In this document: positions 23,078 through 56,569 of the stretch, piece by piece
Layout: the number at the start of each line of letters is the position of its first letter
How positions within the stretch are numbered: position 1 is the stretch's first letter
Source: Klebsormidium nitens
Taxonomy: Eukaryota; Plantae; Klebsormidiophyceae
DNA: 64,000 nucleotides
Direction of reading: 5' to 3'
Assembly (NCBI GenBank): GCA_000708835.1
Contig: DF237011.1
Location: 186,001 to 250,000 of the forward strand
Notes under the pieces: model-generated
Seen by the model: only the letters and a program-made list of their open reading frames with translations
Told to the model about the DNA's origin: nothing
The model's database searches: none
Position numbers and translations under genes: made by a program

Positions 23078-26000
23078 CTAAAGGTTGGGAGGCACGAATC
23101 CGTTGGACTTGCACCGGGGAAAGAAGTTCCCCGGGGGGTTGAAGCCGTCACAGCCGTCATTGTCGCAACAAACGTAGCGTCCCTGCGGATCGTTGTTGTA
23201 CCAACAGCGGATCGGGAAGGCTGACGCGGCTCCTGAGCCGCACACTCCTGTGGACGAAAGCAGCGAGTCAGCATGACGTCTGCAAGCTTGTGTTACAGAA
23301 TGTCGCAGCAATGCTTTCTTCACAGCTAGGGGTCCTATTGCACCAGCAGCGGTCCGCGAAGGCGGACCCGGCCCTTGAGCCGCATACTCCTAGCTGCATA
23401 GAATCTATCGACGTCAGCATGAAGTCAGCAATTTTATATTGAGCTGGTTCTTAAAGAGCGAAAGACTCCGAAGGATCGACGGAGGGTCAAATGGGCTCCC
23501 AAAGTTGAAGTCTCCACAAAGATCGAAAGATTTCCGAAATCCAGTCTCAAGCTCCGCTTTCATGAGGGTCCCTGCAGCCGACGGACTAAGACGAAGTGGG
23601 TTGTGCATGCTCAAACGAGTGCAAAAGGGCTCTCCGAGTTTCGACGTACACTCGGAGAAGCAGATCGAGTCCAGGGACTTCTTCGGTGTTACAGGTCTAG
23701 ATTCCGAAATTTGAGGGCGGCGAATGGCCGCCTCCCTTCAATATATCTACGTGAGTTTCATCCTTATGAGAACGCGTTCTGAGCGAAATAGGAACCTATC
23801 ACTCCGCTGACAAACCGGACGGAGCCCAATGTTTCATCCGGATCAACACACGGAAACAAGTTTGGCCATCGCCAAACCTCCTTACCCGCAGAGGTTTGCC
23901 CATCTTAACCCTGATTCGAAACATCTTCAGCTCACCTTGCGGTCCACCAGACGTAGGTGTGGGCCCGGGAGGCAAAACTTGGTTTGGGGGCACGTATCCA
24001 AAGTTCTTGCAGCGCGGGGTTAGGTTATCGGCGTTGAACCCGTCGCAACCCTGGTTATCGCAGCAGACGTATCGCCCCAAGGGGTCGTTGTTGAACCAGC
24101 AACGGGTAGGGAAAGGTTCGGCGCCCGTCTTTCCGCAAACCCCTGAAGAAATGGGATTTCAATTTAGACGGGTTAGGACACCACTGATCGAGGCGCCACG
24201 TCACTTAGCAACGACCTCAATTTTCAATGAACAGAGGTTGATTGTGCAAGATCGGCATCCTCCCGTAAGGATGTCGATGGATGTTTCTTCCAGAATTCGT
24301 AAGGAATCTGCGCGGCGATTGTATCCATATGGGATAATCACGGAATCCTGGGCGGCCAAGTCTTCAGCGGGCCATCATGTCTTAAGCACCAACGTGTTCA
24401 GAAGACCGTTATTCGTTTCAATCTAGACTAAGGACAGTCGACGAAGGTTGATGAAGGTTGATGGACAAAATAACAATCTGTGAAGCTGACAAGTTTCAGA
24501 AGGACCAGTCCCGAGGACTCAACCCTCCGAGCTTCTTCGCGAGAGGTAGTCCGCCCGAGTGAAGCTGACTGAATTGGATGCTCGGAAGTCAATGGAGTTC
24601 CAAACGGTATAGCTGCCTGACAAACGTTTCAGCACGAGTTGATGTTAACAGGGCGTAAAGTGGGCCTGTTGAAGATCGTTCATATACGCAGCCCTTGGAC
24701 AACTTGTTACTCATCGGTCGCGAAAGTCAGGTTGTGGGTCAGAAACTAATGCGTCCAGCACTCTCGCAAAAAGAATGAATAAGCACTCCGGAAGACTGCC
24801 AGAGATAGAGAGACGGAGAAAAGGTTTTAAGTGGCTGCCCAGGTGGAGCTAGACCAAGACTAGAACGGTTACATCCGCAGAAAACGTTGCTTACGTTCGA
24901 AAGGATACCGTTCGGCGGCGCGGTTTTTTGAGTGCCGACAGGAACCTACTGAAGACTTTGATATGTGTACTGTCTGAGAGATGATGGAACAGCAGCTCGA
25001 TCAAAGCATCACGGTCTACCCAGTCGGACGTAAGCCTTACCCTGGTCAGTTGTAGGAGGCGGGGGCGGCGCTCCATTCTCGCCGAAGTTCGGAGGCACGT
25101 ATCCGAAGTTCCTGCAGTGGGGGGTGAGGTTGTCGGCGTTGAATCCATCGCAGCCTTGGGCGTCACAGCACACGTATCGGCCCTGCAGATAGGCAGATGG
25201 GGTCTTTTCTCATTCTTCGAACATCCCGCGCGCGATTGATTGAAACCCAGGCCACTAGGAAGAAGTAAAACGGCAGCATTCATTGTTAAAAGCGTAACGT
25301 TGACCTCTTAGATTGACGAGTACGCCCCTGAACTCGAAGCTCCCTGTCAATTGAAGCTAGAATGGACGCTACATCAGCAAAAAAAGCCCACCTGGGTCAA
25401 CGGCTGGGTCATAGAAGATAACGTCAACCCAATGAGGTTAATCCTACCAAGTGGGCAACAAGGGTTAGCTGGTTCATGATTACATTTTTACAGAACACGT
25501 CCACCTAGGTTAAATTGGGTCAAGGTAAGGATAAACCGACGAAACAGCCCACTAACCCGGGGGTCGTTGTTGAACCAGCACCTCTGCGGGAAGGCAGCCG
25601 CGTCCCCCTGTTTGCCAGACAGGCCTTGGTCCCCTGTATACGACAGATCACCGGGTTTGCGCGTTGACATGCCAGAATCTGAGCATACGTCTGTAAGAGG
25701 GGCCCTAAGCTAACAAGTAAGGTTGGATGATAGAAGGTACTTCCGACGGGAAACTAGAAAGGTCTCTCCTCTAAGACGTTTCCGAGTTCGTTCTCTTTAA
25801 ATACCAATCATGATGCCAAATCAAGAGCCCCTGGAAAGCACAATGTCAATCTGAACACGAGTCAATCGAACAAAAGCTGGCTCGAAACTGTTTCCATGAA
25901 GGTAGGATGGTATAAGGTGCCCATTGAAGGCGTTTTAGAGACTCTAGTCTAAACCGCGCTGAAGCAGCACGCGGCCCAGCATCTATACAGACAAGGTGCA

Positions 26001-29000
26001 GCCCTTACTTATAGCCATCGGAAGTACGGTCTGATCCGACAAATCCGGAGCAGTCTGCTCTGAACTCGCAAGATCACCGTAATCGGAGCAATTGAATTTG
26101 AAATCTTCGTACCAGTGATCGGCCCGATGGTAGGAGGGGGGGTGGGAGGCGGAGTAGGCGGTGGGGTTCCATTCTTGGGCGTAGGGTTAGGACCCGGATT
26201 TCTGCAAAGAAAAGCGGCGTCTCCATTAAACGTTAGAAGAAGGTTGAATATTTCTTTGATTGAAAGTTGGCTCAATGCAACGTTAAATGAAAGCGGAGCA
26301 AGATTTCGTCAGACTCTTGGAAACCTCGTTCAGTCGGTTCTGGTCAGCTTGAGCGGACACGCTTAGCTAGCGTCCCATGATAAGCTCTCAGGGCGATTCC
26401 TTCCATGGGAGTCTAGCTTGAGATTCACTGAGGCACATTCAAGTAATGCTTGATAGCAAGACGGTCCGCTGGAAGTAGCTGGGCACATGATTGATCGTTT
26501 CTAGTTTGATTGGTGGTAGGCGATCAGTTTGTATCCGGGGAGACTTGCGCAATTGGCGCATCCGCAGTCTCAAAGGCTGCAACTTGAACAACCCTCTTTT
26601 TCTAGTCTTCAAATTTCCACAATATGAGCAGATGACGAAAGAACGATGACCATCTCAGGCCCTACGTATTTCCAACAGACTTGGATTTAATCATTTGGCC
26701 CATGTCACGGACTCGTATGTCTCTTTGTGGTAATGGCGCCGAGTCGATCAGTCCGATGCGAGCAGCCAGCCGACTTATCCAAGATTCTGCTATGGCCAGC
26801 TTGCAGCAATGGCCATTTTCCCCCTGATATTTGAAGGATTCTCACACTCGCACAGCCCGTCAAACTTACGGAAGTTCGCACGTGCTCCCCTGGAAGTTGC
26901 TCGGGCAGACACATTCGAAGGCGCCGTTGACACCATTAAAGTCTGCGAGTGCATAGCATGTGCCTCCGTTCTTGCATGGGCTAGGATTGCACCGGTCGGT
27001 TCCTGCATGGTACGAAACTTGAAAGCATCGAGATCTGCTTGAGCGCTTTGTTCGAACAATGAAATCAACAAATATAGAAGCAGGCAAGTGGCAATTGAGA
27101 ATTCAACCTATGAGGCAAGCAGATAGTTTCTTTACCCAAAGACCTATCTCATTCCCCATGCCCAAGTGCGCTTTGAAATTCACGGATCCCTCCTGATCGG
27201 ACAGAAGGCCTCATGCGCAATTGGCAACCAACCTCGTGACACGGGGCAAAAGACCCCTCAATAAGCACGATTCGGAGAGTCCAGCGCTAGTAGATCCAGA
27301 ATCCAAACAGCGCCTAGCGTGCAGCTGACACGCTGCCTAATTGCTCGAGTTTACCGTGCAAATTCAATGAGCCTGCAGCTGCCGGATTTGAGAGCGCCTG
27401 GTGTGCTTCTACTAGAATATAAGTTCTCCTCAGTCACTCGGACTTGGGGCAGGGCCTCTGCAGATGGTGTCTTTGAAGCATAACGACTTAGAGAGCAGAT
27501 ATTCGGGCTCGAGTCCTTTCAACAGAAGGCTTGCTCTGATCCACGTTTGAACGACAGGATGCAAGTCAGGCCTCAGACATGCTACACAGCTAAAGCGCAC
27601 TGTCAACAAGCGCTCTGACGTTATGAAGCAAGAGCGTCGCTGCAGACCTTCAAAGATGCGTGCATGACATCATACCCACTTTTTGTTCCTGTGTGTGAGA
27701 ACACCGAACACAAACCAGACTTGGAAGGAGGGGGTTGAAAAGAGACTTGTAGAGGCAGAAAGAAGTTCATTAAAAGTACCTGGCACGTAGCAGAAGTCTT
27801 CGTAGATTCTATGGCTGAGCACAGAAGGGGCATTGCAGGTACAGACGGTCTCGACTGTGGTGCGCCCCGAAATGGAATACACTTTGAGCTTACACTGGTT
27901 ACCTGCAGGGGTAACACTAGCGAGATGAGCATGAGTAACAGCATCAAAAACGTGGCATCTGTGCAGCCTGTTTAGCAAAGGGGAAGGTTCAAGTCCGTTT
28001 TAAGGTGAGCGCGCGTTTCTCTAAGCTAGCGGGTTTTCTTTTTAGAACTCGCTTACAGACAAAACCGCCCAAGTCTTGGAAGCGCTTGGTGGGTTGGCCT
28101 CCCTGTTGGACAGAATGCAAGTCGGTTAGTTGCCCCTTTCTGTCTGTCATTGCTTAGAGCAAGTGTCTCTGTGAGTACTGATGTCTGGGACTCAGTGGTG
28201 GGGCGACATGGAGTCTGGGCCAGCAGCCTGATTCCCACTCATGCAGAAAAAGTAGCCCGTCCGATGTAGTCAACAGAAAGGCTAAGTACAAACTGGGAGG
28301 GGCATCCTATAAGGTCCATTCGGTCATGTCCAAACCAAGCCAGAACGGAGCCATTGACTAAATTTTGTCAACATCAGAGTTGAAAGTTTTGTAATTCAGC
28401 AACTACCAAATCCAATACAAAATGCACTGTTTCAAACAGCCTGGCAAAGTCTGACAAAGGGTTGAAGAACAGGGCTCAGCTGGCATTGACAATGTCACTG
28501 ACTGAGTCAAGACCTTCCTCAATTGGAGGCAAGGCTTGCGCTCTCACTCTTGTTGTCATTGTCATAGGACTGCTAGCTTACTATATGGGAGATGTGCAAT
28601 CACATCCTCATGGTAGGAAGTTAAACAGGGAACTCAGGCTTCTGACTCTGCTAGATTCTGAACAGAGTCGATTCTTTGTTAGAGTTTGGGAATTGCACTT
28701 TGACCATTCTGACGAGAGTTTCCTCAATGAGCGCCATTAGGAGCTGACATGTCAGTATTCCCAAGTGACTGATTCTGTCCTAACGGAGACAGAACCAAAT
28801 AAATTTTCTGTCTCTGTTAGGGGGGCTAGGACTATCCGGACGAGGAAATCAAGCACACTTTTCATTGAGCTACCGTGCTCTGGAAGCAAGCACGTCGTAA
28901 GAACGTCCGTTCAGCCATTTCGAGCTTCCCCCTTTTAGATCGCTGAGTACTTCAGTCGCAATTCAACCCATGACCACCTATTACACAGGGCCCCTACTAG

Positions 29001-29404
29001 AATGGCCTCGGATTAAAGCCAGATATTCTGGTCCAAGCTGGTCCAAGCTCAGGGCTGGTCCAATCGGCAACTCTCTGTGTCTCAACTTCAGCTCCCCAAG
29101 GAAATCATAAATGCCGATCACCACATCCTGCAACAGGTAAGGACACATGCAAGAACAGCGCACCCAAAAAGCGCAGATTGATAAGGAAACACAGATTACC
29201 TGCACCGCAGGGCCCAGGATTCCCGTAGCACGGATCCGCACGGCATTCGGAGGGCTCGGTGGGCCCATATATAAAGTAGTTCCATACAAAGAACCCCGTG
29301 GGGCAGGAGAGTGAGTCGTCAAGACTCTGAGAAAAACTCGCTATAGGAAAAGAGAGCCAGCTTGCAATGATCAGGAGCAGAGCGCCGGTGTTGCGGAACG
29401 ACAT
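23078..29404 (-). CDS. Paralog A: secreted EGF + Pro-stalk + 3x six-Cys module protein, 381 aa
   Basis: Exons 29404-29200, 27902-27780, 27002-26870, 26201-26113, 25633-25557, 25182-25041, 24142-23936 and 23247-23078; 1146 nt, open. Signal peptide [25 protein letters not shown]; [32 protein letters not shown]. Confidence 0.9.
23324..23389 (-). pseudogene. Decayed duplicate of the 5' end of paralog A exon 8 inside intron 7
   Basis: TAG|GA GTA TGC GGC TCA AGG GCC GGG TCC GCC TTC GCG GAC CGC TGC TGG reads [16 protein letters not shown], against the true exon [16 protein letters not shown] 142 nt downstream. Confidence 0.75.
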
Positions 29405-31196: not shown

Positions 31197-34100
31197 CTAG
31201 AGGCTAGGGGGCACGAATCCGTTGGTCTTGCAGCGGGGGAAAAGGTTGCCCGGCTGATTGAAGCCGTCACAGCCGTCATTGTCGCAGCAGACGTATCGGC
31301 CCTGGGGGTCGTTGTTATACCAGCAGCGGTTCGGAAAGGCTGACGCCGCTCCTAAGCCGCACACTCCTGCGAGGATACACTTGACGTCAGCATGACGTCA
31401 GCAAGCTCGGAATTGGAATTCAAATGACCCGGAGCGGGAGGTCACGGAGTCAGAAGGTAGACGGAGGGATGGAAGAGGATGCCGGAGCTTCGAAGTCCCT
31501 CGCAGAGGATTATCACACGTCCTGTCTAGAAGGTCCCTTCCGACGCAAACATCGAGAAACAGTACCAGCAAAAGCGGCGATCGAGGCGAGCTTTGCAGTA
31601 CCGCAACGAATTCTGAAGGGCTTCTGCCTCTTCAAAAGAGAAAAGCCGGAGTCGGTAGCCTTATTTCGGGTGCACGGAATCAGGTTTGGGACTGGGAATC
31701 CTGAGCAGAATGGAGTAAGCAAGGGCCAACGCCCTTCCATGCTGATCCTGATCGGCTATTCTGGCACAGCGGCACAGCAAAGTGCTCGGCAAACTTACTG
31801 CTGATTTGCGTTTGGCACGGGGCAACTTAAGTTGTTCATACCCTCTTGTTAAAAAAAGCAAACCCATGTATAAACCACGTCGAGCATGAAACTTTCACCC
31901 CTTTGACCATATTTCAAACCAGCTTGTAGCCAATCCCTGTTCATTACTAGTGGATCCTGGGCACGGGAGGCGGAGGCGCGGATAAACAAAGGACGTGACC
32001 CGTATCTGCGCATGGTAACCATGAAGCAATTTAACCCCAATTTAACCCAGTTTTGAACTCACCTTGCGGTCCACCGGTGGGTCCGGGCCCGGGAGGCGGA
32101 GTGCGGGCGAACTTCAAGATGTCGGGCACCAAGCCAAAGTTCTTGCAGTGCGGGGTTAGGTTATCGGCGTTGAACCCGTCGCAACCCTGATTATCGCAGC
32201 AGACGTAGCGCCCCAGGGGGTCGTTGTTGAACCAGCACCGGGTGGGGAAAGGTTCGGCGCCCGCCTTGCCGCAAACCCCTGAGGAAAACGGGTACGTTTC
32301 AAGTATCAGTCGGGTCGGAGTCTTTCCCATACAGCTTTCAGCTTAGGACAGATATTCTGTTTCATCGAGTGGTCGATGAGCTGAACGGCTCAGGCCCAAT
32401 TGTTTGCTCACCTAATCAGACTTTTATCCTCACTCAAACAAAAGGATTCTGCAAGAACGGGAACTCTTACCATGTTGCGTGGACAACAAAGGCGATGAGT
32501 CTGTTCGTCGACGGAAATCAGTCCTTGACAATCCTCATTGAGGACTGGTTACTCCTGCGCTGATAGGTTGCAAGTCCTTCAGCTAACCAGGTCACAAAAG
32601 CACTGGCGCGAGAAAGGAGTAACATACTCATCATGATCTGAGTTGTCGAGCTGGTTAGATCTTTGATCAGGTTAACAAGGTTCAGTGAACCTCATTCCGG
32701 ATCCGTTCGTTTGGAGTTCTCCGCACGCACGTATTCAGTTCGTTTCGGGACGAGAGTACGATAGTGAAGAATCCAACATGAATCAGGGTTCGACGCGACT
32801 CCAAGACGCAAAGACGAGTCTCCGTGAAAGCAAAGCGGACCAGAAGGTCGTTCACATCGGCAATCCTTACACTCATTCGTTCCCCACTGAGGACGAACGA
32901 CGGTCAGGATTGTAAGTTCGGAAGTGGTATCAAATTTGCTCGTCGAAAGGCCCGGCCTGAGACATCCAGCTTCTTTGCACAGATAAGTTCGCAGCACTCA
33001 AAGAGGAATCACAACCCAATGTCAGAAGCTACGCGCAATCTGCTGAAGCGGCTTCCGATATTAGCGGAGATTGTTCTCCGGTTATACACGCGAGGAGACA
33101 CCGACGTCTGGTGGTGTGTCATTGGGGTGCTGAACGTTTGCTGTGTACACTGTCCGACAATAACCGGAATCAAGGAAACAAGTCATAGAGAGGTTGACCT
33201 GAACCTTACCCTGGTCAGTCGTTGGAGGCGGGGGCGGCCCTCCGATTTTGCCAAAGTTTGGAGGCACGTATCCAAAGTTTTTGCACTGTGGGGTCAGGTT
33301 GTCTGCGTTGAATCCTTCACACCCTTGGGCGTCACAGCACACGTATCGGCCCTGCAGGTAGTACCAATAAAATGCTAACACTCTTTAAGGTGTTCAATCG
33401 AGTCCTCGTTGAGATCGGGTACGCATCCAACTTCGGCAGCATCCGAATCCAGAAGTTCAAGCGTGAGCTTCAAGAGACAGTTCGGGACTTCACCCCTTGT
33501 TTCATCGAAATTCGTCTCATACTAGCTGAAACTTGGAGCTAGACCAAACAGAGACGAAAAGCCCCCGGCTCACATGAGTTTGGCTTCGTTGCAAACTTGG
33601 AAAACCCACATGGCTTAGCTACAGTGATTCTAAACCAACAGAAATACCCACATGGGTTAGCGAGGACACGATAGTCCTCAACCCACCGAAATGCTCACTT
33701 ACCTCGGGGTCGCTGTTGAACCAGCACCTCTGCGGAAAGTCAGCCGCGTCGCCTCTGCCACAGATCGGGCCTTGTTCCACTGTATACAAGCATAGCCGGA
33801 TTAGAACCATAACCATGCCTGGTCAAGTCTCTGAATCAGATTAGTGCCCAGGAAAAAGAGACCTTAACCGCAATTGGTAACCGCACATCGGGGCCGGCCG
33901 GATGATAGTAAATACTCCCTAAGCAATCTAGGAGGGTCTATTAGTTTTCCTGACTTCATGCATGTACTTTTTCTTTCCAGCCTAGATGCCAACGTGGGGG
34001 CGTCTAGCAAGCAAAGCTGGCCGCTGCTCGACTGATCAAAAGAGAGATCTGCACCAAACCGAGACGCAAAGGGTAACACGGTAATGAATGACGTTTCTCG

Positions 34101-37094
34101 GGCTCATTGTGATACATGGCTCCACGCTCCAGCAGCAAGCAGCATACCAGTGAAGGACGAGCTGAATCCTTTGCCAGCGATTTGTAAACAAATCTGTAAG
34201 AGAATCTGCAGCAAAAGCATGCCATCCGAAAGTAGATTGAGAAACGAGAAGCGTAGCACCTAATGAAGGCAGAGAAGATACAGCTTGTGCCAGCGACTCA
34301 TACACGGATAGGACAGTTTGGGCAGATTGCATGCATCTTAAAGTGAAGTAAAGCGAAGCTCGACTGAAAGTGTCGTACCAGGCGGTTCAACGACAATGAT
34401 AGGTGTGGGAGAGGGAGTCGGAGTGGGCGGCGGAGGTCCAGTCCTGGGCGCGGGGATGGGAGCTGGGTTTCTGCAAACAACGGAGCTACGGTTTCAGTGA
34501 CTCATATTGGTTAAAAGATCTTGGTCGAGTGTCTTTCGACCAGAGGGAGAGCGCCCTTTTAGAGAGCCTGACTGGTCAACATATGGTCAACACGAGATGG
34601 ACAGAACGGATAGGCGGTAAGCTGCTCACATGCTCGTTATGAAACCGGTCAAAAGAAGGCAATTCCCTTGACCTTTTAGAATGACAGATAGCTTGTTCAG
34701 TTGACCTGGTCTTGACCAAATTCGTTGGTGTCTCCGAGTGGGCTGCCATGCAAACCCCTTTGAATTGCTCCAACTTGATAAGGGGATTAGCAGGGGACAT
34801 AAACCAAGACGGTGGGGCAGAACCTGAGCACGTAACCCGTTGAAAATAACAGTGACGTCTGTGGTGCCTGGACCTGACGGAATTCAGAACGGGATTCAGA
34901 ACGGTATTCAGAGCGGTTTGTATCGAGGTTATGCAAACCATCGAAAACGAGAAAAGGAGCATGGGACTGATCTAAACCGTCTGTGACCTGAACCGTGACT
35001 CTTGCTGAAACGGAGACGAGTCAATTCCAGCGTCCAGTCGTCTTCTGGCGGGTGAGGCAATGCCGCCTTCCAAGTTGTTTGGGAAAATTTTGATTACTCG
35101 CAAACTCACACAGCTGTCAAACTTACGGGAGTTCGCAAGTGGTTCCCTGGAGGTTACTGGGGCAGGTACACCTGAAGGCGCCCTGGACACCGTTGAAGTC
35201 TGTGACTGCCTCACACGTGCCTCCGTTCTTGCACGGGTTTGGGTTGCACCGATCGGTTCCTGCTCGGTAAGAGGATTCTGTTTGGAAAATGTGAAAGCCC
35301 CCATGTAAGAGTCTTCTGGCATCGATTTTTGTTCGGATATCAGGGAAGAGACCATCTTATCAGAGCAGCAGGCCTCTTTATCGAGGTAGAAGATCGATCT
35401 TGACTTCGGACAAAAGTTAATAGGATTGGGAACGAGAGTTTCCACTTTTTTGGCCCATACAACGGCCGCCCAGCCTTTACCTCGCAACACTGCCTAGCAT
35501 TCACTGTGTTTCCAGATTTATATATGACATGCAGCTACTGCCAAACTTGGTGCGGCTTGGTTATGAAGAGCTCTTTAATTAATAGAGACATTGGGTGAGG
35601 CCTAATGAAATGCCCTCAAAAGTGTAACAAGTAGAGAGCAAACTCGTTGTCTAAGACTCTCCTCATACGAGAAGCCTTGCTCTGAAAACTTTTAATCAAC
35701 AGCTAGACAGTTATTAGCCAGGCCTTAGACGTTTTATGCAGCAAAAGGGCACCTGCCACCGTCAACTGAGCTCCATAAGGGACAAAGCCTTGCTGCATAG
35801 CACACAATGCATTCATGACTTCATACCCAGCTTTATCTTCCATATGAGTAGAAAGACCTGAAGAATCACTGCATGTAATAATAGAGGAGCCATCAAGAGA
35901 GAAGAGCTTCCAACCTGGGTACCCTGGCACATCGCAAAGAGGAAATAGTAGGAGACCTACTTACCTGGCACGTAGCAAAAGTCTGCGTAGACGATGTGGC
36001 TGAGTATAGAAGGGGCATTGCAGATACACACGGACTCAATTGCGGTGCGCCCCGAGATGGTAGTCGGCTTGTATGTACACTGGTTACCTGCAGGGTTACA
36101 TCACTATGATGAGCTCAAGTGAAAGCTTGAAACATTGACACCTTTGCTGTGGGTCTAGCACAGAGGAGAATCCCATGTCAACCCTTGTCTTGTTACTGCT
36201 TTTGTGCCTGGCAGGTTTGAGTGTGGCTTTTGGCGCGTTTATTGCTAGGATTAGAATGAATGGTACTTGTGAAATTCGATGTCTCTGAAGAGGGAGAGGA
36301 GGTGCGTCAGATGAAGTTAATAGGAAGGCTCCGCCGAAAAGGCCTTGTACAGCCCGGGCTGGCTCACTGTGGCACTGTTGACTCTGGCTGACTTTGGCTG
36401 ACTTGGATTGACTTGGGGAACATAAGCTTGAGGCCTTGGTAGATGAAGAGTACCTCAAAGACACAAAGACTCTGCTATTTGCCATTTTAGATTGTGGAGT
36501 AGAATTTCCGGAGCTATCAGGATCGTTCTTGTGCTGGGAGAGAAGGGCAACATCCCCAAGTAAAGGTGCAGCTGATGACTTTGTGAAAGTTGGACAAAGA
36601 GAGCAGTACAGTGTCAGCAATCTTAAACCGTGACTTCCTGGTCGAAGCGCCCTTGCATTTGGTCAGAGCACAATCTTGAGGCTGGTCTAAGCAGCACCTT
36701 GTTCTGTTTGAGCCAAAACAACAGTGCCTGCAAAATCAAGCTCACTACATACGGCAACATGTTTGTCACTTTCAACCGACTCGTTTCTGACCTTGACCTC
36801 AACAGGGTTTTCAAAATTGCTTTCAAAATTGAGCTCAGGCAACTACGCAATGTGACAAATTGATAGGAACGTCAACGACAATCTTACCTGCACCACAAGG
36901 ACCAGGATTTCCAAAGCATTTATCAACGGCGCACACCGGGGGCAAGGCACCAACAAAATCGTTCAGGCCCGAATGAACCCAGCAGGGCAGGAAAAGTCCT
37001 TGTCGACAATCAGAGAAACAGTTGCTGTGGGAAGAGAGATGCAGCTTGCAATCATTAGCAAAGCAGCAGCGCGAAGCGCCATTGCGGCGACCAT
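31197..37094 (-). pseudogene. Paralog B: same 8-exon architecture, 1-nt deletion in exon 1
   Basis: Exons 37094-36888, 36087-35965, 35259-35127, 34470-34379, 33779-33703, 33351-33210, 32278-32063 and 31366-31197. The signal-peptide frame reads ..CPAGFIRA* (TGA 36965-36963) while [19 protein letters not shown] is in another frame. One extra C (ATT CCG GGC) would restore FIPGLNDF. All other exons are intact. Could be an assembly error. Confidence 0.75.
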
Positions 37095-44575: not shown

Positions 44576-44665
44576 AGTGTTAGGATGTTGAGACCTCAGG
44601 TTCTTAGGGTTTTAGGGTCGAGGGGTAGGCGTCGAGGTAAACTCAGAGTTTTTGGGTTAGGGGCT
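44576..44665 (+). repeat. Degenerate telomere-like (TTAGGG/TTTTAGGG) tract immediately after the stop codon
   Basis: ttagggttttagggt at 44604-44618 plus variants. Complementary ccctaaa/cctaaaa tracts follow the stops of A (~23050-23080), B (~31150-31200) and D (~50170-50220). Confidence 0.5.
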
Positions 44666-46366
44666 ACTAGTTTTAATTCAATGGGTTCGTGCCCTCCAGC
44701 TTCTAGAGGTTTAGCTTGGAGACCTGGTCATAACCGGGGGCGGATTTTGCTCGAGAGCCGCCGGTAGGAGAGCAGCCAATGAGTCCCTTTCTGCCGACTC
44801 GTATGCAGACTTTGTCTTCTAACCACGCCTGGTTGACGAGTAGTTAGCCGACCGGTCGAGTTAACGCAACCAGCCACAATCAACTGTCTCTTGTCTATCA
44901 ATCACCCGGGAGCAGCTTGTACATAAAGAGGCCGTAGTTAGTTTAGACTGCGCGCCGCCCAGCTACTGGTCTGATTAGCGTAGTAATGCCGCTTTCGTTT
45001 GTAGACAAGAAGAGGCATAGTCACGCATTAGAGCCTAAGTGTCTGGAGTGGAACTTCGTCACGTTTAGCGCCGCGCAACTGAATGTTCGCATCGTGCAAA
45101 GATGCTGGTCGTCGTTTTGATCCGCTTGAGTTGTCAAGTGTGTGTTCTGGTATAGCTGTGAAGTTTGGATTTCGGTCCGTCAGCTTGATTGATCTTGGAA
45201 TGATCTTAATTGTACGTCTGGCCCATCATCGAATCCAGCTTCGCTACAATATTTAAGATCGCCTTGAACGTACACCGCTAGGCTTTCGATGGATTGATCC
45301 GGCCTCAGGGCCTCTCCTCTTACTCGCACACCGCCATGCATGCCCACGATCATGTAGGTGCTGTGATTCCTGAAGTCTGAGGGCCTGGGTCACCTTCTCA
45401 TCGTTACTATAAGGCATCATAGCAATGATCAGATACGGTGCACACCATGAATAAGCTTAGTAGGACACTGCAGTCACTCTCCTAACAATTTTTCTAAGCT
45501 ACGGTACATAAACCATCGCCGGTCGTCACAGTGTCATGACAAAGATTGAACCGTCATGTACTCATGCATCAATACATGCAAGACGTAAAGCTGAATGGCG
45601 GCCGGAAAAGCGGGCCGTGGGGCGGCGACATATGCCAGGGATAACGTTCACAATGCACATGTATTTTTACATGAGAGTCGGTCCATTGAATGCAGGAGCA
45701 ACAGATCGTGCAGATTTGGCGGCCGCAGTTCCGTTGGACGCATGCATATGAGCAGTCCAAAGTCGTTTCTAGCTGATCCATCGAAGCTTCAAATCATGTT
45801 CGATTTGATCAGTGAGAGGAAAACAAGGTTTGCAGCTTTGAGGGAGCTCGACAGTGACTGGCTTCGATATACTACGACGTTGCACATGAAGTGAACCTTC
45901 CCGACCACTCAAGTCTTGCTACTTGATTACCGAAAAGCGTGATTGCATGTCGAAACCTACTCGGAAGCACACACGGCCCGTGTTTTATTGGCTGAAATGC
46001 CTAGTACTGGTGCATAGATCCTGAGACCAGTCCAGCTTTCAACACCAATCTACGGTGATTGGCGAGTCAAATGGCAACGCTTTCACGGTGATCCGCCGCT
46101 TTTCCGCCAATCTGACCGGCGCTAAGTGAGAGCGCGGGCACACCGAAATTTCGTCCACCGTCAGCGGCATCATTCTGCGGACGTCACACCTCTCCCGGCC
46201 AGGCCAGAGGGCAACTCTGTCCCCGTCTACAGTTTTGGTATCACTTTCTTAATGTAGCTGTGTTCCGGATCCCATTCAGGGTACTGCCGATAGGGTCCCC
46301 CCTCTCAGGTCTTCATCCACGTGCACCATCCGAGAATGGCCCTGATTAGACTGTAGAAGCAGCCGG

Positions 46367-46416
46367 ATATACGACATACGATAGACGATATACGATATAC
46401 GATATACGATATACGA
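46367..46416. repeat. (ATATACG)7 microsatellite
   Basis: Seven 7-bp units, two with single substitutions. Confidence 0.9.
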
Positions 46417-49400
46417 GCCTCATCGTGATTTTGCCCCGCTCTCGCCCTTTTCTTTCTTCTTCCCCTTCCGATTCCGGTCCGCTTCCGCGTGTTCCGCTTC
46501 CTGCCTCCAAACGCCGTCAAGATCCGCCCAATCGAGCGCCAAATCCGGGCAACGTTCTACGCCGTGTCTCCGTTCCGCTCCCCTTCAGCCGTTCCGTTCC
46601 GGCCCCTCAACCGTCTTGCTCTGGCTGCCCGCCGATTATGACGAATGTCAATTTCGCCACAAACTCGACGAATAAAGAACAGTCGCCAAATCTTACAGCG
46701 CTCGCGCCCACAAACTCCTTGCCCTCCACCGTTCCCTCACAGAACGCCCCGCTACGCGCGCGCGCCCGGTTGCCCGCGGCCGCGGCAACGGCCGCTCTGC
46801 TCTCCCCTCTTTGTTCAATAGCCTTTCCATCCTCCTCTTCGTCTCGACGTAGCAGGCTGAGAAATTCTGCGAAGCTCGCATGCGCAAAAACGACCACTCC
46901 CAAAAATCATCTCGCTTTGGGAAATGCTTTGGGAAATGCATTCTTTGGGAAATGAATTCTCTAGATCACACCCGGGCTTCTTCTCATTCTCGGATGCAAA
47001 CGGGCAGCAACCACTCGGCCTCTGTCCGGACAAAGAAGTCAACAATATCGATGACAAGAGGCTATGGAGCGGGCGAGTTCCGCCCATTCTTCGCGCCCTC
47101 TAGATCTTGTCCGGCGCCGGAAGGCCTTTGGACGTCTCCGCCCTGTATACCCTGACCTCGATCTGCTTACCTGAAACTTTGGACAAAAGCTCCACCCCTA
47201 CTAGTGGCCCGAAGAACGTTCTCAGTTCTTTGGTTCTCTGAAAGTAGAGCCCCTTCGCCGCTCTCCTCTTCAAGGAGCCCCCAGCCCCGCCTTTCAGTTC
47301 ACTGCTGTCCGCCCGGTAAGTTCGGGATTCCGGTCTTGCAGATCATCATTTCCGCCGAGCTTCAGTACGTCAGGCGCCCCTCTGTCCTCACTTCCATTGG
47401 AAACTCCGCCTACCCGGGTGGGTTATCCCCCGACTTCGTAGCACCCAAACCCGCCTCATTCTCCCGCGAACCAAACTCCCCGCTGACGTCACGTATACCT
47501 CAGCGTTCTCCCCAGCCTTTTTATTACGGTACGAATGTAAGAACCGTTCCGGTCGCCTCCAAGCGTTGAGCCTCGGCGTCGCCCCCACTTTCCGCCGCTT
47601 CGATCCACGCCTGGGGTTCCGTTGCATCAACAAACACAGGAATCTTTTGCCGTTAACCACCGACGATTATGGGCTTGTTAAGGAGTGGTTATGTGTCCAA
47701 CAGACTTGGGCGGTGACCAGCAGCTGTGGATCAAAGTTAAACACCGGCTATTTATCCAACAACCCGAAATTGAGACTGGTAAACAGCCTAATTAGCGGCC
47801 AGAATTTCTTCTGAAATCTGCGGTCAAAGCAAGCGCGGGCGGGCGAGTGCGGCCCCATCCCCACCGTCGCTTCCCCCTTCCGTTTCCGCTCCATCTTTCG
47901 TTCCGCTCTCAGCTCGCGGGACCGCACCGGACGAAGCCCGTCTTTTCGCAGATATACAGACGGCTCGAAACTTCTAGGTACTTCTGTTCCGATGATAGAC
48001 TCAGCCCTCGTAAGCATCCACCTCGTCACCGTCCGCTTCCGGCTGACGTCACATGCAGCTTGAGGCCTCTGAGGGAGTTCAGCGCAACGAGGCCCCAACA
48101 GTTAGGAACTTAATGTTGGGGCCGAACCAAGTGTCAGTCGATAGGTCCATGTGGGCAATCTTGTGCGCACATTCGAAACCTGCGAGGGGACGGAAAGAAT
48201 AAAGACAGAAAGTCGCGTTGTATCCTTCCAAGTGCCGGTTGATCAGCACGCGGCGACGTCGGAAGTAATCAAAGTACTCTGAGGTCGCCGGAAGGAAGGA
48301 CGACTGCATGTTTCCCCGCGACCAAGAAGCAGGCGCCTCGCTCTTGGTTCAGAGATGCAGAGCGGATGCGTTAGGGGAAGCAAAAGCGTACAGAGGAACG
48401 GCTTCAAATCAGAGGTACTTCGACGGCCGGGCCTGCACCAGAAAGCACGACAATACGAAAAAGCATACAAGCGGAACAAGATCCGATGCTCGGGAAGGCG
48501 CGCGCGGGCACCGCGCTGAGGGATCCTGAGAGGGAGACTCGCGCTTGCCCAACAGCTATTCTGTGCGCGAGCGGCGCAACGTGCGTGCGCGCTGTCAAGA
48601 TCAACGGCGGCCGGACAGGGGCAGCGTTAAAGTTCCATCTTTGTAGCTTTCAATAAAGACTCAGAACCGAGCTGGTCTCAAGGTCAGCTGAGTTGATTGT
48701 TTCATGCGATGGTCGACCGATCGGACTTAAGCAACATATCGGAGCAGGCGCGCGGTCATGCTAAGGAACAGCTCCAGATTTAGAGCGTAATCTGATGCGG
48801 TATGTACTTCAAGAACAATATAGGGGCGTTCAATTCAATCCTGGCAGTATACGAGGGGTACCCGTAATAAGCCAGCTTCTCTCAGGTACATGTCAGCCAA
48901 AAGGGGAAATAACTCCGCCCGTACTCCGAATCAGAGTTCCAAAAATTGATGAAATTGAATTCGAACACTAAAATTATTCGGGTGCATCGCTTTTTATAAG
49001 GGCGGCTCAGACTCGCCGCTGCGCCGATGGTCCGATCACCTTTCTGAAGCATCATAGTATGATCTTGTACTGCAGTGCATGTCCTTCCCAGACTACGGTT
49101 CATGCATGATAAGCTGTTCGAATGCTTGCGAGTATTCATATATCATGGCATCAGTGACATTCAGTTCAGAGCGCCATGCAATTTTGCCGCCTCTTGTGCA
49201 GTGTGTATCAGTCGGAAGACGGTGATTGCAATCGCCCACGCGGAACATATCATCAGTTTTCCACCGAGCCATATAAGAAGATGATATGCAAATGTTCTTC
49301 AGAACAAGGCCATTTGAACAACGTCAACAAATGCGCAGATAGCCGTAACGGATGCTTTACAACCTGACCATTTGTTTCAAATACCGTATGCATGCTGCAT

Positions 49401-51480
49401 ATAGCAGCATACTGCCCCGTACAAGTATACAGATTTCTAACTTGAAAATCAAGGCACACTGACACATTTTGTAAGTTTGTGCGAAGTGAGTTCGACGGGC
49501 GGGTAGGCCAGACAAGGACGCAAAACTACAAAGGTTGACGTACTCAAGTTCGATTGAAGAAGAACGCAAAGTACAATAAGCGGTGCGTTTGTGTGAAAGA
49601 TCAGCTATCGCTGCAACAGAGTAGGCAAAAAGTCTACGCAACGCTACTCGCGACCATGACGTGCTAACGTTATGATCAATGACTATCCGACTCCCTTTCT
49701 TCAAAGGCTATCTCTCGTTACTACTCTCGTTAGTAAATCAGCATCGATCTGGACTGGGAAGTCACTAACTGCACGACCACTGACTGCACGACCACTAACT
49801 GCACGACTCTCACCCTAAACGGACAATTAGGGCAACAGTTTTGTGTCATGTAACTTTCTCAACAAGCTGTCTGATTAGAAGCCGACAAATTTCTAAAGGA
49901 GGGGTGCTTGGGCGCCAATCCACTGTGAGGCAATAAATCAACGGAGCCTAAGCAACGGCGGCGGCTAATCAACTAATCAACGGCGGCCAAGTACTCAACA
50001 ACTAGGCAACGGTCGAAGAGTCGAACACAAATGTCTTTGTGTACGACAATGCACTCAGCGGCGCCGGCTGGTCACTCTACCGGCATCAGTATGCCAAAAG
50101 CTTCTCTGAATACAGTGGCCTCTTCGAGCAAAAACACTGGAGGTGGGGGGGCAAGAATCCGTTGGAGTCAAAAACCTAAAAACGTGAGAAGCGTAACACC
50201 CCAGAAACCCTAAACCCTTTAGAGGCTGGGGGGCACGAAACCGTTGGTCTTGCAGCGAGGGAAAAGGTTGTCCGGCTCGTAGAAGCCAGCACAGCCGTCA
50301 TTGTCGCAGCAGACGTAACGTCCTTGGGGGTCGTTGTTGTACCAGCAGCGGTTCGGGAAGTCTGACGCTGCTCCTAGGCCGCACACTCCTGCGAGAAGAC
50401 ACTCGACGTCAGCATGACATCAGTAAGCTCAGGTTTGAAACGACCTGCAACGGAGGTCGTGAAGTCGGAAGGTCAAACGGGCTTCGGAATCCCTTGCGAA
50501 AAGCGGATTCACACGTTTTGTAGTCCCTTCGGGCGCAAGTATTGGGAAACTAACCGGACGCCAAAGCGGATGCGATTTTTTAGTACCGCAAACAAATATG
50601 CCGAAGGGCTCTTGCAGCTTCAAGACTGTAGAAGCAATTTCCGAGGGAGTCAAAACACGTTATTGGTGCCCTTAGAAGCGGGTTCGGTTTCGAGATTCGT
50701 GAATAGGCGCGATTAGGCAAGGGGCCAACGCACTTCTATGCTGAGCAGCTCTTTCGGCATAGCCAGCATCCTCGGCAGAGTTATTGCTGATTCACATTTG
50801 GGACGGGGCAGAGCGCTTCATACGCAAGAAACAAACCCATGCCTAACCCTCATCGAGCATGCATCATTCACCCGGCTTTAACCATGATCCAAACCAGCTA
50901 CCCTTTTCTTTATTGATCACCTAGCTGGCACGGGAGGCCAAGCGGATAAAGAAAGGACGTGACCCATACCGGACTCGTTTTAACCCAAAGCTTCGTCTTT
51001 TTTAACCTTACACTACCCCAGTTTCCAACTTACCTTGCGGTCCACTGGCGGATGCGACGGGCGCGGGAGGCGGCATGCTACCGGACATGTTGGGCACATA
51101 ACCAAAGTTCTTGCAGTGCGGGGTTAGGTTATCGGCGTTGAAACCGTCGCAGCCCTGGTTATCGCAGCAGACGTAGCGGCCCTGGGGGTCGTTGTTGAAC
51201 CAACAACGGGTGGGGAAAGGCTCAGCGCCCGGCATTCCGCAAACGCCTGAGGAAATGGGGTTTCGATTAGACGGCCGAGTTCGAAGTTTCATACGGGCTT
51301 TGTGATTTCAAGACGTTCTTTGATCGTAGCTGTTAAAGGCACTGCCATACTCAAAAGAGACCCGCAAAATCTTTTCGAGTGCAAAAATAAAAGATTCTGG
51401 GGTTGAGAACACACCGTCTGGTGGAGCGCTATCTGGGTGAGGACATGAGATAATTCGAAGTTCGTTGAGCAGAGTGTCGG

Positions 51481-51738
51481 GCTATCAACGACATAACAAG
51501 TTAAAGAAAAACGTCATAACCAGGCCAACACAGGAAGGTTTGGCTGCTAACCAGGTTCGAAAACCACACTTCAGTCTGGTTCTTTGACCAAGAACCGCGT
51601 TGTAGCCATGTTAAAAGTTGGTACTGTTCGAGTTTGGTCATTGGACAGTTAACCAGCTTCGTTACCGAGTGTGGTTAACCGCCAAAAACCCTGTGCTATC
51701 AACGACATAACAAGTCAAAGAAAGCGTCATAACCAGGC
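51481..51738. mobile_element. MITE-like insert (51539-51686) flanked by ~45-bp direct repeats, paralog D intron 6
   Basis: Imperfect inverted ends tttggctgctaacc / ggttaaccgccaaa (12/14). gctatcaacgacataacaagt.aaagaaa..cgtcataaccaggc occurs at 51481 and 51695. Confidence 0.55.
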
Positions 51739-54280
51739 TAACGTAAACCTTACCCTGGTCACCCGTAGGAGGCGGGGGTGTCGTAGGAGGCGAAGGCGCC
51801 CCTCCGCTTGCGCCGAAGTTTGGAGGATAGTATCCACGGTTCTTGCAGTTGGGGGTGAGGTTGTCGGCAATGAATCCGTTGCAGCCTAGGTAGTCACAGC
51901 AGACGTATCGGCCCTGGAGGTAAGAGGAAAAAGAAGTCTTCGAACACTCTTCGAAGCGCTTGATTGGGATCCGTACGGCTTGACGTGCTCTGTGTCATAA
52001 ATTTTGAGCGGGGAGCCCCGCCTCTCCCAAGAGGGGCAGCATACGTATTCGCTCGACTTGAGCGTGAGAAGTTAAGCGCAGTGATTCACCCCTTGTTTAG
52101 AAGCTAACTAAAGCTACAGAGAATTTGAACTATGTAGTCCAACAAATGAGGCGAAAAGCCCCGGCCCACATAGGTTTGGCTTTGTTGCAAAAATGGAAAG
52201 CTCGCATGGTTTTGCTGGGTTACCTGGTTCTAAAGGACGAGAAAGCCTACATGGGTTGGCGGGACACGGTAAACCGTAACCCACTAAAAAGCCCACTTAC
52301 CTGGGGGTCGTTATTAAAGTAGCACCTCTGAGGGAAAGGGAGCCGCGTCCCCTAGGCCACAGACGCCTTGGTCCAAGTAAGGGCCTTGTATACAAGCAAA
52401 GCCGGGTTAGAACCGTTATCATGGCTGGTTGAGGGTATCTCGATCAGATTGAGAACAGAGTCCGTCTGTTGAGAGGGCCCCTAGCTGACCACAAAGTCGT
52501 AGTTGGGGCCGGATAATAATAAGTACTTTCTAACAAATGTGATGGTCTTTCTCTTGACTCGTTCTTAAGATTGCTACGCCAGTCCAGATGTCAACGTGAA
52601 AATTCCCTCGGGCCAATCAAAGCTGGCAGCTCCACAACTGATCAAACTATTCCGGGCGCTCTGCGAGAGCTGCCGTCACACTCCGGCAACAATCAGCCGC
52701 ATAGCATTCAAGGGCAGAGAAGATAGCTGTGCAGCGACTCATACAACATTGCGACCACAGCGGATTGCATGGAACATCAAAGTCAAAGAAATAAGGCGGA
52801 TTGACTGAAAATCTTGTACCGGACGGCGGAAAGTTGCCGAAGGGAATGGGAGGGCGACTCGACGTCGATGTGGGCGGCGGGGTTGCCGTCCAGGGCGTCG
52901 GTTGGGGAGCTGGATTTCTGCAAAGAAACGGAGCTACAATTTCAGTAACCCATGTTGGTTAAACGATCTTGGTCTAGTATCTTTCGACCAGAGAAAAAGC
53001 GCTTTTCCGAATTTCGTCTTGATCGGTATATCTTGATCAAGACGAGGCTGAAAAGACGAACGGGTTGTAAGCTGCACAAGCTCCTTGAGTAAACCGGTCA
53101 AAGGATTGTTTTTTTTTGCGCAAAATGCGGCCCCTGACTCAGTTGGACCTGATTTTGACCGGATCCGCTGGTGTCTCCGAGTGGACTCTCACACCGATTG
53201 CTTTAATCTGGATTTTGTAAGGGGATTTTAAGAGAATGACACCATATAACCAAGACGGTGAAGTGAGGATGCCGAAGTAGCGACGTCTGTTTTGTGTCCG
53301 GTGACGGGGTCCAGGAGGGTTCTGTATCCCGGTTAAGCAAACAACCGAGGTTGGAAAAAAGGAGCATCGGATTCATCTTAAACGTGAGCGATCGAGAACC
53401 TAGTCTAGCCTCATCTTGCTGATACGAAAACAAGTCGATTAAAAGTTGCCAGTCGACTTAGAGGAAGGTTTTGCTGGCGCGTTGAGCAAATCTCATCCTT
53501 CATGTAGTCTAATTATTTTTGTACATAAAACTTTAAGCATTCACAGACTCAAACGGCTATCGAACTTACGGCAGCTCGCAAGTGGTCCCCTGGACGTTGC
53601 TGGGGCAGGTACATTTGAAGGCACCCAAGACACCGTTGAAGTCTGCGACCGCCTGACACGTGCCTCCGTTCTTGCAGGGGTTGGGGTTGCACCGATCGGT
53701 TCCTGCGCGCCAAGAAGAAATTCTGTTCGGAAAACTGTAAAAGCCCCCAAGTAAGAGTACTTCTTTTGGCATCAATCCATTTGTTTCAATGTCAGGGAAG
53801 AGACCGTCTTTTCAAGGCAGCAAACCTCTTCTCAAAATGAGAATACAATCTTGTCTTCGGTGAAAGACAATTTCCTTGGAATGGAGGTTTCACTTGGACT
53901 TGTACTTGCGCGCAGCCTTCACCTCGCAAAACCTGCCCATTGATTACTCTGTGGGAAGATGTACACTCTTGGCAACAGATGTGTCGAGGCCTGGTTAAGG
54001 GCTCTTGTAATCTATATGAACATTGGGTGAGACCTAGTGAATGCCATGCCCTCATAACCAGAATGACAAGAGAAGAAACTCAGTCTCCTTTCTCAGGAAG
54101 CCTTGCTTTGAACCCCGTTCGAGCATCAGGGCCTAATCACCAATTAGCCAAGCCTCAGCAAAAGGGCACCTTCATCTTTACTACTCATTGTGACTCAGCT
54201 CCATTATGGACAGAAGCCTTACAGCAGAGTCTGACGATGCATGCATGACTTCATACCCAGCCTTATGGTAATTCTGAACA

Positions 54281-54433
54281 GAAAGACTAACGAAGAAACT
54301 GCATTCTGGAGAAGATGGCAGATCAGCCAGAGACACAGAAAGACTTCAAACCTGGCAGCGAAAGACTGACGAAGAAACTGCATTCTGGAGAAGATGGCAG
54401 ATCAGCCAGAGACACAGAAAGGCTTCAAACCTG
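54281..54433. repeat. Near-perfect ~74-bp direct repeat (period 79) in paralog D intron 2
   Basis: gaaagact(a/g)acgaagaaactgcattctggagaagatggcagatcagccagagacacagaaag(a/g)cttcaaacctg occurs twice. Confidence 0.92.
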
Positions 54434-56569
54434 CCATTGAGTACCTGACACGTAGGAAGGGTTCCTAGAGGGAAAGACTTCGGCCTACTTACCTGGCACG
54501 TAGCAGAAGTCTTCGTAGACGATGTGGCTGAGCACAGAAGGGGCGGCGCAGGTGCACACAGACTCGAGGAAGGTACGCCCTGAGACGCCGGTCGTCTTGT
54601 ATGTACACTGGTTAGCTGCAGGGCTACACCCGGGTTAGACCAGGGTGAGTGAAAGCCTGAAAACATGTAACACCTTTGCAGCATTGTCCAGCACAGGGCG
54701 CGGGCTTTTTGTCGACCAAAGACTGCTACTTCTCTTTTGCCAGGCTGATTGAAGTTTGGCTCTTGGCGCGTTGTTTGTTAGCAGCATAGTGAATGTTTTG
54801 GTGAGGATCAATGTCTCTGAACAGGAGAGGCGGAGCGTCAAATGAAGTTCAAGGGACGCGAAAAGGCCTTGTACAGCAGGCCTGACTCACTGTGGCACAT
54901 TGACTCTGGCTGACTTTGGCTGACCCTGGTTGACTCAGATTGATATGGACCAGATTCACAATCCACAGAAGTATCGAACACCTGAATCTACATTAGACAT
55001 CACACAAGAAGCAATGCCTGCCAATAGCTCCCAGGCTCAAAACACGGTCTTCTCCAGAGAGCCTGGCTTTTTGACAAACAAGTACAGGGTTGAGATGTTC
55101 ACAACCCTTTATATTGAGATGAAGCCCACAAAATGGAAGCGAGCAGGTCTTGAGGTCTAATTTCTGATAGGACAGCCAGCTTGCTACTTGATAAAAAAGG
55201 GCAAATGCATTGGGGGGCAGTTTTGACTGGGGACCATAAGCTTCAGGCCTTGCTAGATGAGAAGAACCTCAAAGGACCTGGTATTTGCCATTATGAATTG
55301 AGGAACATCTTTTTCAGGAGCAATCAGGAAAGGTTTTCAGCTGTTTGACCTTTGACAATTGGACAAGAGAGCAGAACAGCTTCAGCGAGCTTCCACCATG
55401 ACCTCCTGGAGGAACTTGGTCCCTTGCATTTGGTTGAGAGACAAGTTCTGAAGCTGATCCAAGCAGCATCTTATTTTTGTTCAAGTCACAAAACAACAGG
55501 GCCTGCATTCTCAAGCTGACTGCACAATGCAGCAATATGTCTGTCTGTCTCAACCAACTCTTTCTTTCACAGAAGACAATACATGACATTGCATGACAAC
55601 AGGAGCTTACATAAATGAGCTCAGGCTGACTATAACACAATGTGACACTCTGATACGTACGTCGGCGCAATTTCATAGGACATTTGGGCCCGTAATGTTG
55701 GATGGTTACGGGCTGGTTAGAAAGTGGGTGTATGTCCAATAGTGAGACTTGGGTGGTAACCAGCCTTGCAACAAGGTTGAAGCCGGGTTAATTGTCCAAT
55801 AACCAGAGACTCAAGTGCAGTTATCAGCCTGGTTAGCGGCCAAAGCTTCCTGTGATACCTTACCTGCACCACAAGGACCAGGGTTCCCAAAGCACTTATC
55901 CACAGCGCACACCGGGGGCAAGCCAAGGACTTCGCTCAGGGGAATGAACCCTGGGGGGCAGGAGAAGTCCCTGTCGGCAATCTGAGAAACAGTCGCCGTG
56001 GGAAGAGAGAGGCAGGTCGCTAGGAGGAGCAGAGCTGCGGCGGGGAGCGCCATCGCGGCGGCCATTTGCTAGCACCAGGAGCTCTGAATGGGAAGGCAAT
56101 CTAAATGCTGCTCAATGAGGTGTCGTCCTGAGACGTTCTAAAAACGAGCTGCACCTGGGAATGAGCTACCTACGACAATGCGAGCTGCAAATGTAGGGGA
56201 GGACAGGAAGGACCTTCTTGCGAATTGCTGTTTGATCTGCTCTGCAAATTATGCTGCCCCTAGTCTATCCATGCCACATGGATGATGGGCCATAATGCGT
56301 GGGAATGCCGGTGATAGGTAGTCTGGACTCTGGACTCTGGGCTCTGATTCTCAAGTCAGGATGTGTGCAGTGACTGTGCACTGTGAGTGGCAGAGCCTGA
56401 GAGACACCAATTTCACTGTGAGTGGCTACACTGTGGTCGCTGAAATTGGCTGGACGCGCCCTGCATTTCCAACGTCTCTATTTGGTACCGTAGCCAATCA
56501 CAAACAGGATGTCGTGTAAAAGGTTTTAACCAGGACAGGTGGACCCAGTGCTGCTGACAACTACCGTAC

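Follow-up and report, generated by a model that had tools for sequence, protein, structure and literature searches.

A cluster of four paralogous genes, here called A, B, C and D (strands -, -, + and -), is located in a 64,000-nucleotide stretch of the genome of Klebsormidium nitens NIES-2285 (GenBank assembly GCA_000708835.1, contig DF237011.1, positions 186,001 to 250,000). This stretch will be referred to as the window, with positions counted from its first nucleotide. The layout of each gene consists of a signal peptide, an EGF-like domain with eight cysteines, a canonical EGF domain, a Pro/Thr-rich stalk, and three modules of 52–55 amino acids with six cysteines in the order C-C-CC-C-C. 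The modules are connected through Pro-rich linkers. The module is a real, undescribed, genus-restricted orphan domain family without described relatives, and mosaic extracellular proteins that combine EGF and this novel module as phase-1 exon cassettes exist in a streptophyte alga. Evolution by phase-1 exon cassettes is usually linked with animals, and EGF mosaics are uncommon in streptophyte algae. The initial annotation of the window went further and proposed a candidate for an undescribed system. This is too strong, as the proteins are a lineage-restricted orphan domain family, already public as hypothetical proteins, rather than a system of several components.

The six-cysteine module

A six-frame scan of the window finds twelve modules that contain GRYVCC, three at each of the four loci. 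The cysteines have the pattern C-x11-C-x11-CC-x4-C-x11-C. The GRYVCCD and NxDP motifs and the last three Cys residues are invariant (12/12 copies). The Trp residue is found in 11 of the 12 copies (Tyr in module 1 of D), and the Cys set is also complete in 11 (Cys1 is Ser in module 1 of A), in agreement with the near-invariance of these positions described in the initial annotation. Across 37 copies, four Cys residues are invariant and all six nearly so. Aromatic residues are conserved at seven positions within the 52 residues, and modules 1 and 2 share a conserved NLT sequon.

The AlphaFold2 model of the 52-residue module, calculated with a 37-row alignment, has a predicted local distance difference test (pLDDT) score of 92.7 and a predicted template modeling (pTM) score of 0.71, with four short strands. 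Each copy of the module is predicted to be a β-rich domain holding three disulfides. No Pfam family was found for the module even at E ≤ 10 (four copies scanned), and a sequence profile search of the Protein Data Bank (PDB) gave chance matches only (E > 1). The best match of the model in the PDB by Foldseek has an E value of 6.9, and VIA-align found no chain with Z ≥ 2 among 48,161, nor on a second look; both are weak negatives for a domain of only 52 residues. Feature-based searches of the ESM Atlas, with one module and with the three-module region, produced no usable match, while a shape search of the Atlas with the module model returned unrelated large proteins only. The module therefore remains without a match to a described domain, as had been noted initially. 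The fold searches are weak evidence obtained with a predicted model, and indicate that no known relative can be found; they do not make the fold new.

The module resembles the knottin and hevein-like domains (the latter being carbohydrate-binding module (CBM) family 18). They share the order of the six Cys residues that characterizes knottins, small size, β-rich character, conserved aromatic residues, and use in tandem, which for hevein-like domains is seen in lectins of the wheat-germ agglutinin type. The CC-x-x-x-G-C-x-G segment of the module is also reminiscent of CCS-x-x-G-x-CG in hevein. However, the loops of the module are much longer (11/11/0/4/11), and the spacing from CC to the next Cys is 4 instead of 5. 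For hevein, or chitin-binding type 1 (CBM18, PF00187), there is no Pfam match at E ≤ 10 and no fold match by Foldseek or VIA-align, the latter being weak for 52 residues. Membership of the trefoil family was rejected, as was a bacterial or viral origin.

A profile of the 12 modules was searched against 1.84 billion representative proteins (E ≤ 0.001). There are 28 matches, the weakest of which (for example P0025 and P0026) look spurious. All the named matches are from K. nitens or K. subtile, and the remainder come from contigs without a label (metagenome, ENA or Logan). In K. nitens the family numbers about 15 genes, several of them in tandem pairs, which are annotated as hypothetical or 'EGF-like domain-containing'. 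Its members have one to four modules, and the partner regions, all of extracellular type, are the EGF pair, a stretch similar to LDL-A (below threshold), and other Cys-rich regions. An enzyme, kinase or transmembrane domain fused to the module is never seen among the family members. Pfam scans of P0036, the public protein of gene C, and eight other members find only EGF, weak LDL-A and DUF7933 matches, and no pherophorin domain.

One of these Cys-rich regions (alignment A6, for example in KFL_000420110/P0032) is a divergent homolog of the module, with a probability of 96% and an E value of 1.7e-9 by hhalign and the six Cys residues in register. It has CGPxGPDG instead of CDGFNxxN and lacks NNDP. 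This variant is present as a single copy, placed after the second EGF domain and before the canonical modules; none of the four genes in the window has it. A Cys-rich C-terminal tail (A7) was rejected as a third subtype of the module, as it is in register but not significant (probability 6%, E 0.006). The most divergent copy of the module is P0027 (MCGSSGPTSDFPVRCNFPGDNSGKRYLCC…; L001, 6001-6549), on a 30.9-kb genomic contig (Logan SRR23617307) where it adjoins genes with a Tcp11 domain. This copy may mark the presence of the family beyond the genus Klebsormidium.

In the literature, no paper names KFL_000620290-320 or describes the module, and none combines Klebsormidium, EGF-like and cysteine-rich. 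The module is not described in reviews on lectin evolution and on the extracellular matrix of green algae.

The Cys order of the module, which is that of knottin- and hevein-like peptides, also fits a different kind of protein. The products could be precursor polyproteins, with the modules cut at the linkers to release disulfide-rich antimicrobial or signaling peptides, as in the multi-knottin or hevein-like precursors of plants. The flanks of the module are conserved (…VPPNFG… and …G(D/P/S)QG|VCG), and the range of one to four modules among the members would suit such a precursor. On the other hand, the Pro-rich linkers act as spacers and lack dibasic, acidic or Asn/Asp processing motifs, single modules also occur beside unrelated domains, the EGF pair and stalk are conserved under selection together with the modules, and no fold match to knottins or hevein is observed. 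We regard this explanation as improbable.

Gene structure and domain architecture

The twelve modules, four paralogs and eight homologous exons of the initial annotation are all borne out, by the six-frame scan, by exon-limited nucleotide similarity, and by explicit GT..AG models. In each gene, only eight blocks are similar to the other loci, and the introns do not align. The exon junctions were solved by frame compatibility and canonical GT..AG sites. A relaxed tblastn search of the whole window with the module and the N-terminal region finds no fifth gene. The description as a four-gene cluster holds for the number of loci, but in the assembly B and D carry insertions and only A and C are intact. 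The features of the cluster are as follows, with the domains listed for gene C.

23078-29404, minus strand: gene A, intact open reading frame of 381 amino acids, eight exons (29404-29200, 27902-27780, 27002-26870, 26201-26113, 25633-25557, 25182-25041, 24142-23936 and 23247-23078)
23328-23390, minus strand: degenerate partial duplicate (21 residues) of the start of exon 8 (module 3), inside the last intron of gene A, found by tblastn
31197-37094, minus strand: gene B (KFL_000620300), eight homologous exons
38292-44575, plus strand: gene C (KFL_000620310), intact open reading frame of 393 amino acids, eight exons (38292-38505, 39467-39589, 40570-40705, 41659-41756, 42419-42501, 42881-43022, 43618-43833 and 44406-44575)
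38292-39589, plus strand: signal peptide and 8-Cys EGF-like domain of gene C (exons 1-2), from hydropathy and the N-terminal structure model
40569-40706, plus strand: EGF domain 2 of gene C, from the PF00008 match; paralogous copies at 26869-27003, 35126-35260 and 53569-53703, all on the minus strand
41659-41756, plus strand: Pro/Thr-rich stalk exon of gene C (exon 4), reading …TSPPTLPPTPPPTTGPP…
42419-42970, plus strand: module 1 of gene C, split after NNDPQ by a phase-0 intron (42502-42880), with the joint 42501/42881 present in RNA contigs
43617-43772, plus strand: module 2 of gene C, the reference copy, to which the AlphaFold2 model with pLDDT 92.7 belongs, on a phase 1-1 exon, with Cys at 3, 15, 27, 28, 33 and 45 of 52
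44405-44563, plus strand: module 3 of gene C (NPPxNxFP type), the most constrained copy
50219-56065, minus strand: gene D, eight homologous exons

The exons of modules 2 and 3 both begin in phase 1, with the first Gly residue of the module as the precise starting point. Module 1 is also a phase 1-to-1 unit, interrupted by the phase-0 intron. The modules are therefore symmetrical exon cassettes.

In a protein search clustered at 90%, the public protein P0036 (389 amino acids) is the same as the gene C model from its second Met residue onward, the start Met apart. Products of the other three genes are also annotated publicly. The product of A has 344 amino acids (23078-28150) and lacks the exon for the signal peptide. 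In gene B, a 2-bp insertion in exon 1 (TTCATTCGGGCCTGA, within 36963-36977) leads to a TGA codon at 36963-36965, and the public product P0041 (369 amino acids) bypasses this frameshift with an alternative start and N-terminus, without a signal peptide. Gene D has a 1-bp insertion in exon 5 (within 52325-52343) that leads to stop codons, and the acceptor site of this exon is degraded (52370-52392); the public product also has 369 amino acids. Exons 5 and 6 of D together (51754-52373) form a phase 1-to-1 unit, and skipping both would preserve the frame and give a protein with two modules. B and D are probably decaying copies. In gene A, the loss of Cys1 from module 1 (GLSG, codon within 25614-25625) leaves 31 Cys residues in the mature protein, compared to 32 in C. 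This loss and the lesions in B and D are probably recent.

Genes B and C are arranged head to head, with about 1.2 kb between them (37094-38292). No gene is called between C and D in the public record. In part of this spacer (46000-48000), the GC content is raised (0.557) and the GC skew is strongly negative (-0.205); the spacer also contains a (GATATAC)n microsatellite (46366-46416).

The only hydrophobic segment in the proteins is the N-terminal signal peptide, with an A-S-A cleavage motif. There is no transmembrane segment or glycosylphosphatidylinositol (GPI) signal, and no 19-residue window has a Kyte-Doolittle hydropathy above 1.6 beyond the signal peptide. The C-terminal 19 residues are hydrophilic (mean hydropathy -0.4 to -0.5), and a GPI-anchored or transmembrane surface protein was rejected for lack of a C-terminal hydrophobic segment. 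The Cys count of mature C is even, as expected of an oxidised extracellular protein.

The second EGF domain of C has six Cys residues in EGF spacing and matches Pfam family PF00008 with an E value of 1.4e-8 and 35.2 bits, above the cut-off of 21.5; the score for P0036 is 27.4 bits. The first unit has eight Cys residues and no Pfam match. The AlphaFold2 model of the N-terminal region (residues 22-154, 133 residues) has a pLDDT of 81.9. In Foldseek comparisons, it aligns over 121-136 columns with the EGF tandems of Notch-1, Delta-like 1, DLK1 and Del-1 (probability 0.95-1.0), with an E value of 4.2e-4 and a probability of 1.0 for EGF20-24 of Notch-1, and single EGF repeats match it at TM 0.75-0.87. 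The alignment supports the assignment of two EGF-like modules. Together with the hydropathy and the PF00008 match, it upholds the initial description of a signal peptide followed by two such modules, and of a protein without a transmembrane segment or anchor. In comparison to the arrays in Notch, Delta and Del-1, the EGF domains here occupy only the N-terminal third of the protein, besides the eight Cys residues of unit 1.

The second EGF domain contains PCKNGGTC, which has the spacing C2-x4-T-C3, and NGG.C is invariant across the family. This spacing is the consensus for O-fucosylation of EGF repeats in animals. The best structural matches to single EGF domains are substrates of POFUT1 and POGLUT1.

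The stalk, of about 30 residues, is short and probably carries hydroxylation and O-glycosylation. SPPP occurs only once, in a linker, and an array of SP3-5 repeats is absent. An extensin-type hydroxyproline-rich glycoprotein (HRGP) was rejected, as the stalk has no repeated Ser-Pro(3-5) motifs.

Expression, selection and duplication history

Sixteen probable RNA runs from five studies contain 21-52% of the words of the region 36800-44600. Three RNA-type runs, each from a different study, and one DNA run were aligned to 36905-42900. The joints 38505/39467, 39589/40570, 40705/41659, 41756/42419 and 42501/42881, corresponding to introns 1-5 of gene C as modeled (GT..AG), are present in all three RNA runs, and none of them is in the DNA run. 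Gene C is spliced and transcribed, which disposes of the concern that A and C might give no spliced transcripts as far as C is concerned. For gene A, the transcript seen is an A-like ortholog (P0037). The transcripts of C start near 37881-37913, about 800 bp from the start codon of B.

The insertion in gene B is reproduced without mismatch by a contig from the DNA run, which may be the source data of the assembly. For exon 1 of this gene, two of the RNA runs lack a contig, and that of the third is unspliced and of low depth; such contigs prove presence, not absence. The best description of gene B at exon 1 is therefore silent or almost silent.

At 42494-42502, contigs from both RNA and DNA break or switch into sequence that encodes other modules (with loose ends …GRYVCCDN…). 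This switch is a crossing in the assembly graph among near-identical module repeats, not alternative splicing.

The genes are under purifying selection. The pairwise ratio of nonsynonymous to synonymous substitution rates (dN/dS) is 0.19-0.26 over 253-256 codons, with dS of 0.4-0.63, and the ratio for module 3 is 0.045-0.13. An artefact or a non-coding repeat is ruled out by the spliced RNA and by these ratios.

In the tree of module copies, the grouping is by position and not by gene, with a split between the module 3 type and the types of modules 1 and 2 at 99/96 support. The triplet is therefore older than the gene duplications. Moreover, gene C and the K. subtile transcript P0035 have an identical module 2, and P0037 resembles an ortholog of gene A with Cys1 intact. 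As a result, the triplet and the A/C duplication appear to precede the divergence of these taxa. Exon 6 has 92% DNA identity between A and C (25041-25182 and 42881-43022), with dS of 0.10 compared to 0.57-1.19 in other regions of the two genes. This suggests a local patch of gene conversion between inverted paralogs about 17 kb apart. With two of the four copies broken, the stray partial exon, and the conversion patch, the birth-and-death expansion proposed in the initial annotation is supported.

This turnover in a tandemly duplicated family, together with the Notch/Delta-like EGF tandem, would also be in keeping with a ligand for recognition between cells or between self and non-self (in filament adhesion or mating), acting via the EGF pair, while the modules would serve as spacers or determine specificity. 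However, dN/dS is uniformly low and gives no hint of diversifying selection, and the modules are nearly identical between species, the opposite of the usual recognition loci. The proteins also lack a membrane anchor, and there is no obvious receptor partner. A recognition ligand is highly improbable.

Proposed function of the mosaic proteins

The reading that we favor, with confidence that is about evenly balanced, is that of a secreted and unanchored mosaic glycoprotein that works as a multivalent binder in the extracellular wall or matrix. The reading is based on three near-identical, aromatic-rich disulfide modules with Pro-rich spacers, located behind a stalk that is probably glycosylated. 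Repeated disulfide modules on Pro-rich spacers behind a glycosylated stalk are a classic design of multivalent extracellular binders, and we infer a plausible binder role from this architecture. The lectin, adhesin, cross-linker or defence roles suggested in the initial annotation would likewise be read from it. Also in favor are the confident fold of the module, its conserved aromatic residues and NLT sequon, the low dN/dS, the restricted distribution, the extracellular type of the partner regions, and the proposal that the wall of this alga contains a glycoprotein framework yet to be identified (PMC4927632). The three modules would be repeated binding units, extended on a stiff glycosylated spacer. 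Their ligand would most likely be a glycan of the wall or of microbes, which the protein may cross-link or agglutinate. The module spread as phase-1 exon cassettes, with the triplet formed first and the genes duplicated afterwards.

Several observations weigh against the binder. No similarity to a lectin or a CBM is found by Pfam, by PDB sequence, by Foldseek or by VIA-align. True CBMs are often fused to glycoside hydrolases, and the module is never fused to one in the family members. Secretion and glycosylation are predictions. Moreover, half of the four copies are broken, and A is short of one Cys residue, so the cluster is partly dispensable.

The volvocine HRGPs (pherophorins and wall proteins of the GP type) offer a comparison for the overall design. 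They are likewise secreted proteins of the green lineage, in which Pro-rich rods, probably with glycosylated hydroxyproline, are combined with globular Cys-containing domains. Both the volvocine proteins and the Klebsormidium family are lineage-specific tandem expansions that build or decorate the extracellular matrix. In contrast to the volvocine proteins, those of Klebsormidium have a short stalk and EGF domains, belong to a different lineage (Klebsormidiophyceae), and show no sequence relationship to them.

By analogy with these chimeric glycoproteins, the proteins could be structural blocks of the matrix. They would self-assemble or be covalently cross-linked into a wall framework, with the modules serving as heads for self-association and no foreign ligand involved. 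The Pro/Thr stalk and the Pro-rich linkers do separate globular Cys-rich domains, the unpaired Cys in gene A could make an intermolecular disulfide, and the family has the roughly 15 members mentioned above. A glycoprotein framework has been proposed for the wall, without identified proteins (PMC4927632). However, the length of the stalk and its lack of classical extensin repeats do not favor such a block, and neither a pherophorin nor an extensin domain is found by Pfam. In addition, residues of surface type (NNDP, GRY) are highly conserved across the paralogs, for which a specific binding site is a better fit than a bulk scaffold. Such a structural role is unlikely.

Returning to the multivalent binder, a bolder form of it can be put forward very tentatively. 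The module would be a new fold that founds a carbohydrate-binding (lectin- or CBM-like) family confined to Klebsormidiophyceae. The trivalent proteins would then make up the proposed glycoprotein framework, or act as a surface lectin that agglutinates microbes, in a terrestrial streptophyte of an early-diverging lineage, and would have been assembled by exon shuffling in phase 1 as in animals.

The significance of the family is limited by its restriction to one genus and by a function that is inferred. Eukaryotic genomes commonly contain orphan Cys-rich domains. On the other hand, Klebsormidium is a key model for the adaptation of green algae to land. The wall glycoproteins of K. nitens have not been identified (PMC4927632), and the family, which is expressed and under selection, is a concrete candidate. 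With it comes a disulfide-rich domain that folds confidently and for which no relatives can be detected in sequence or structure.

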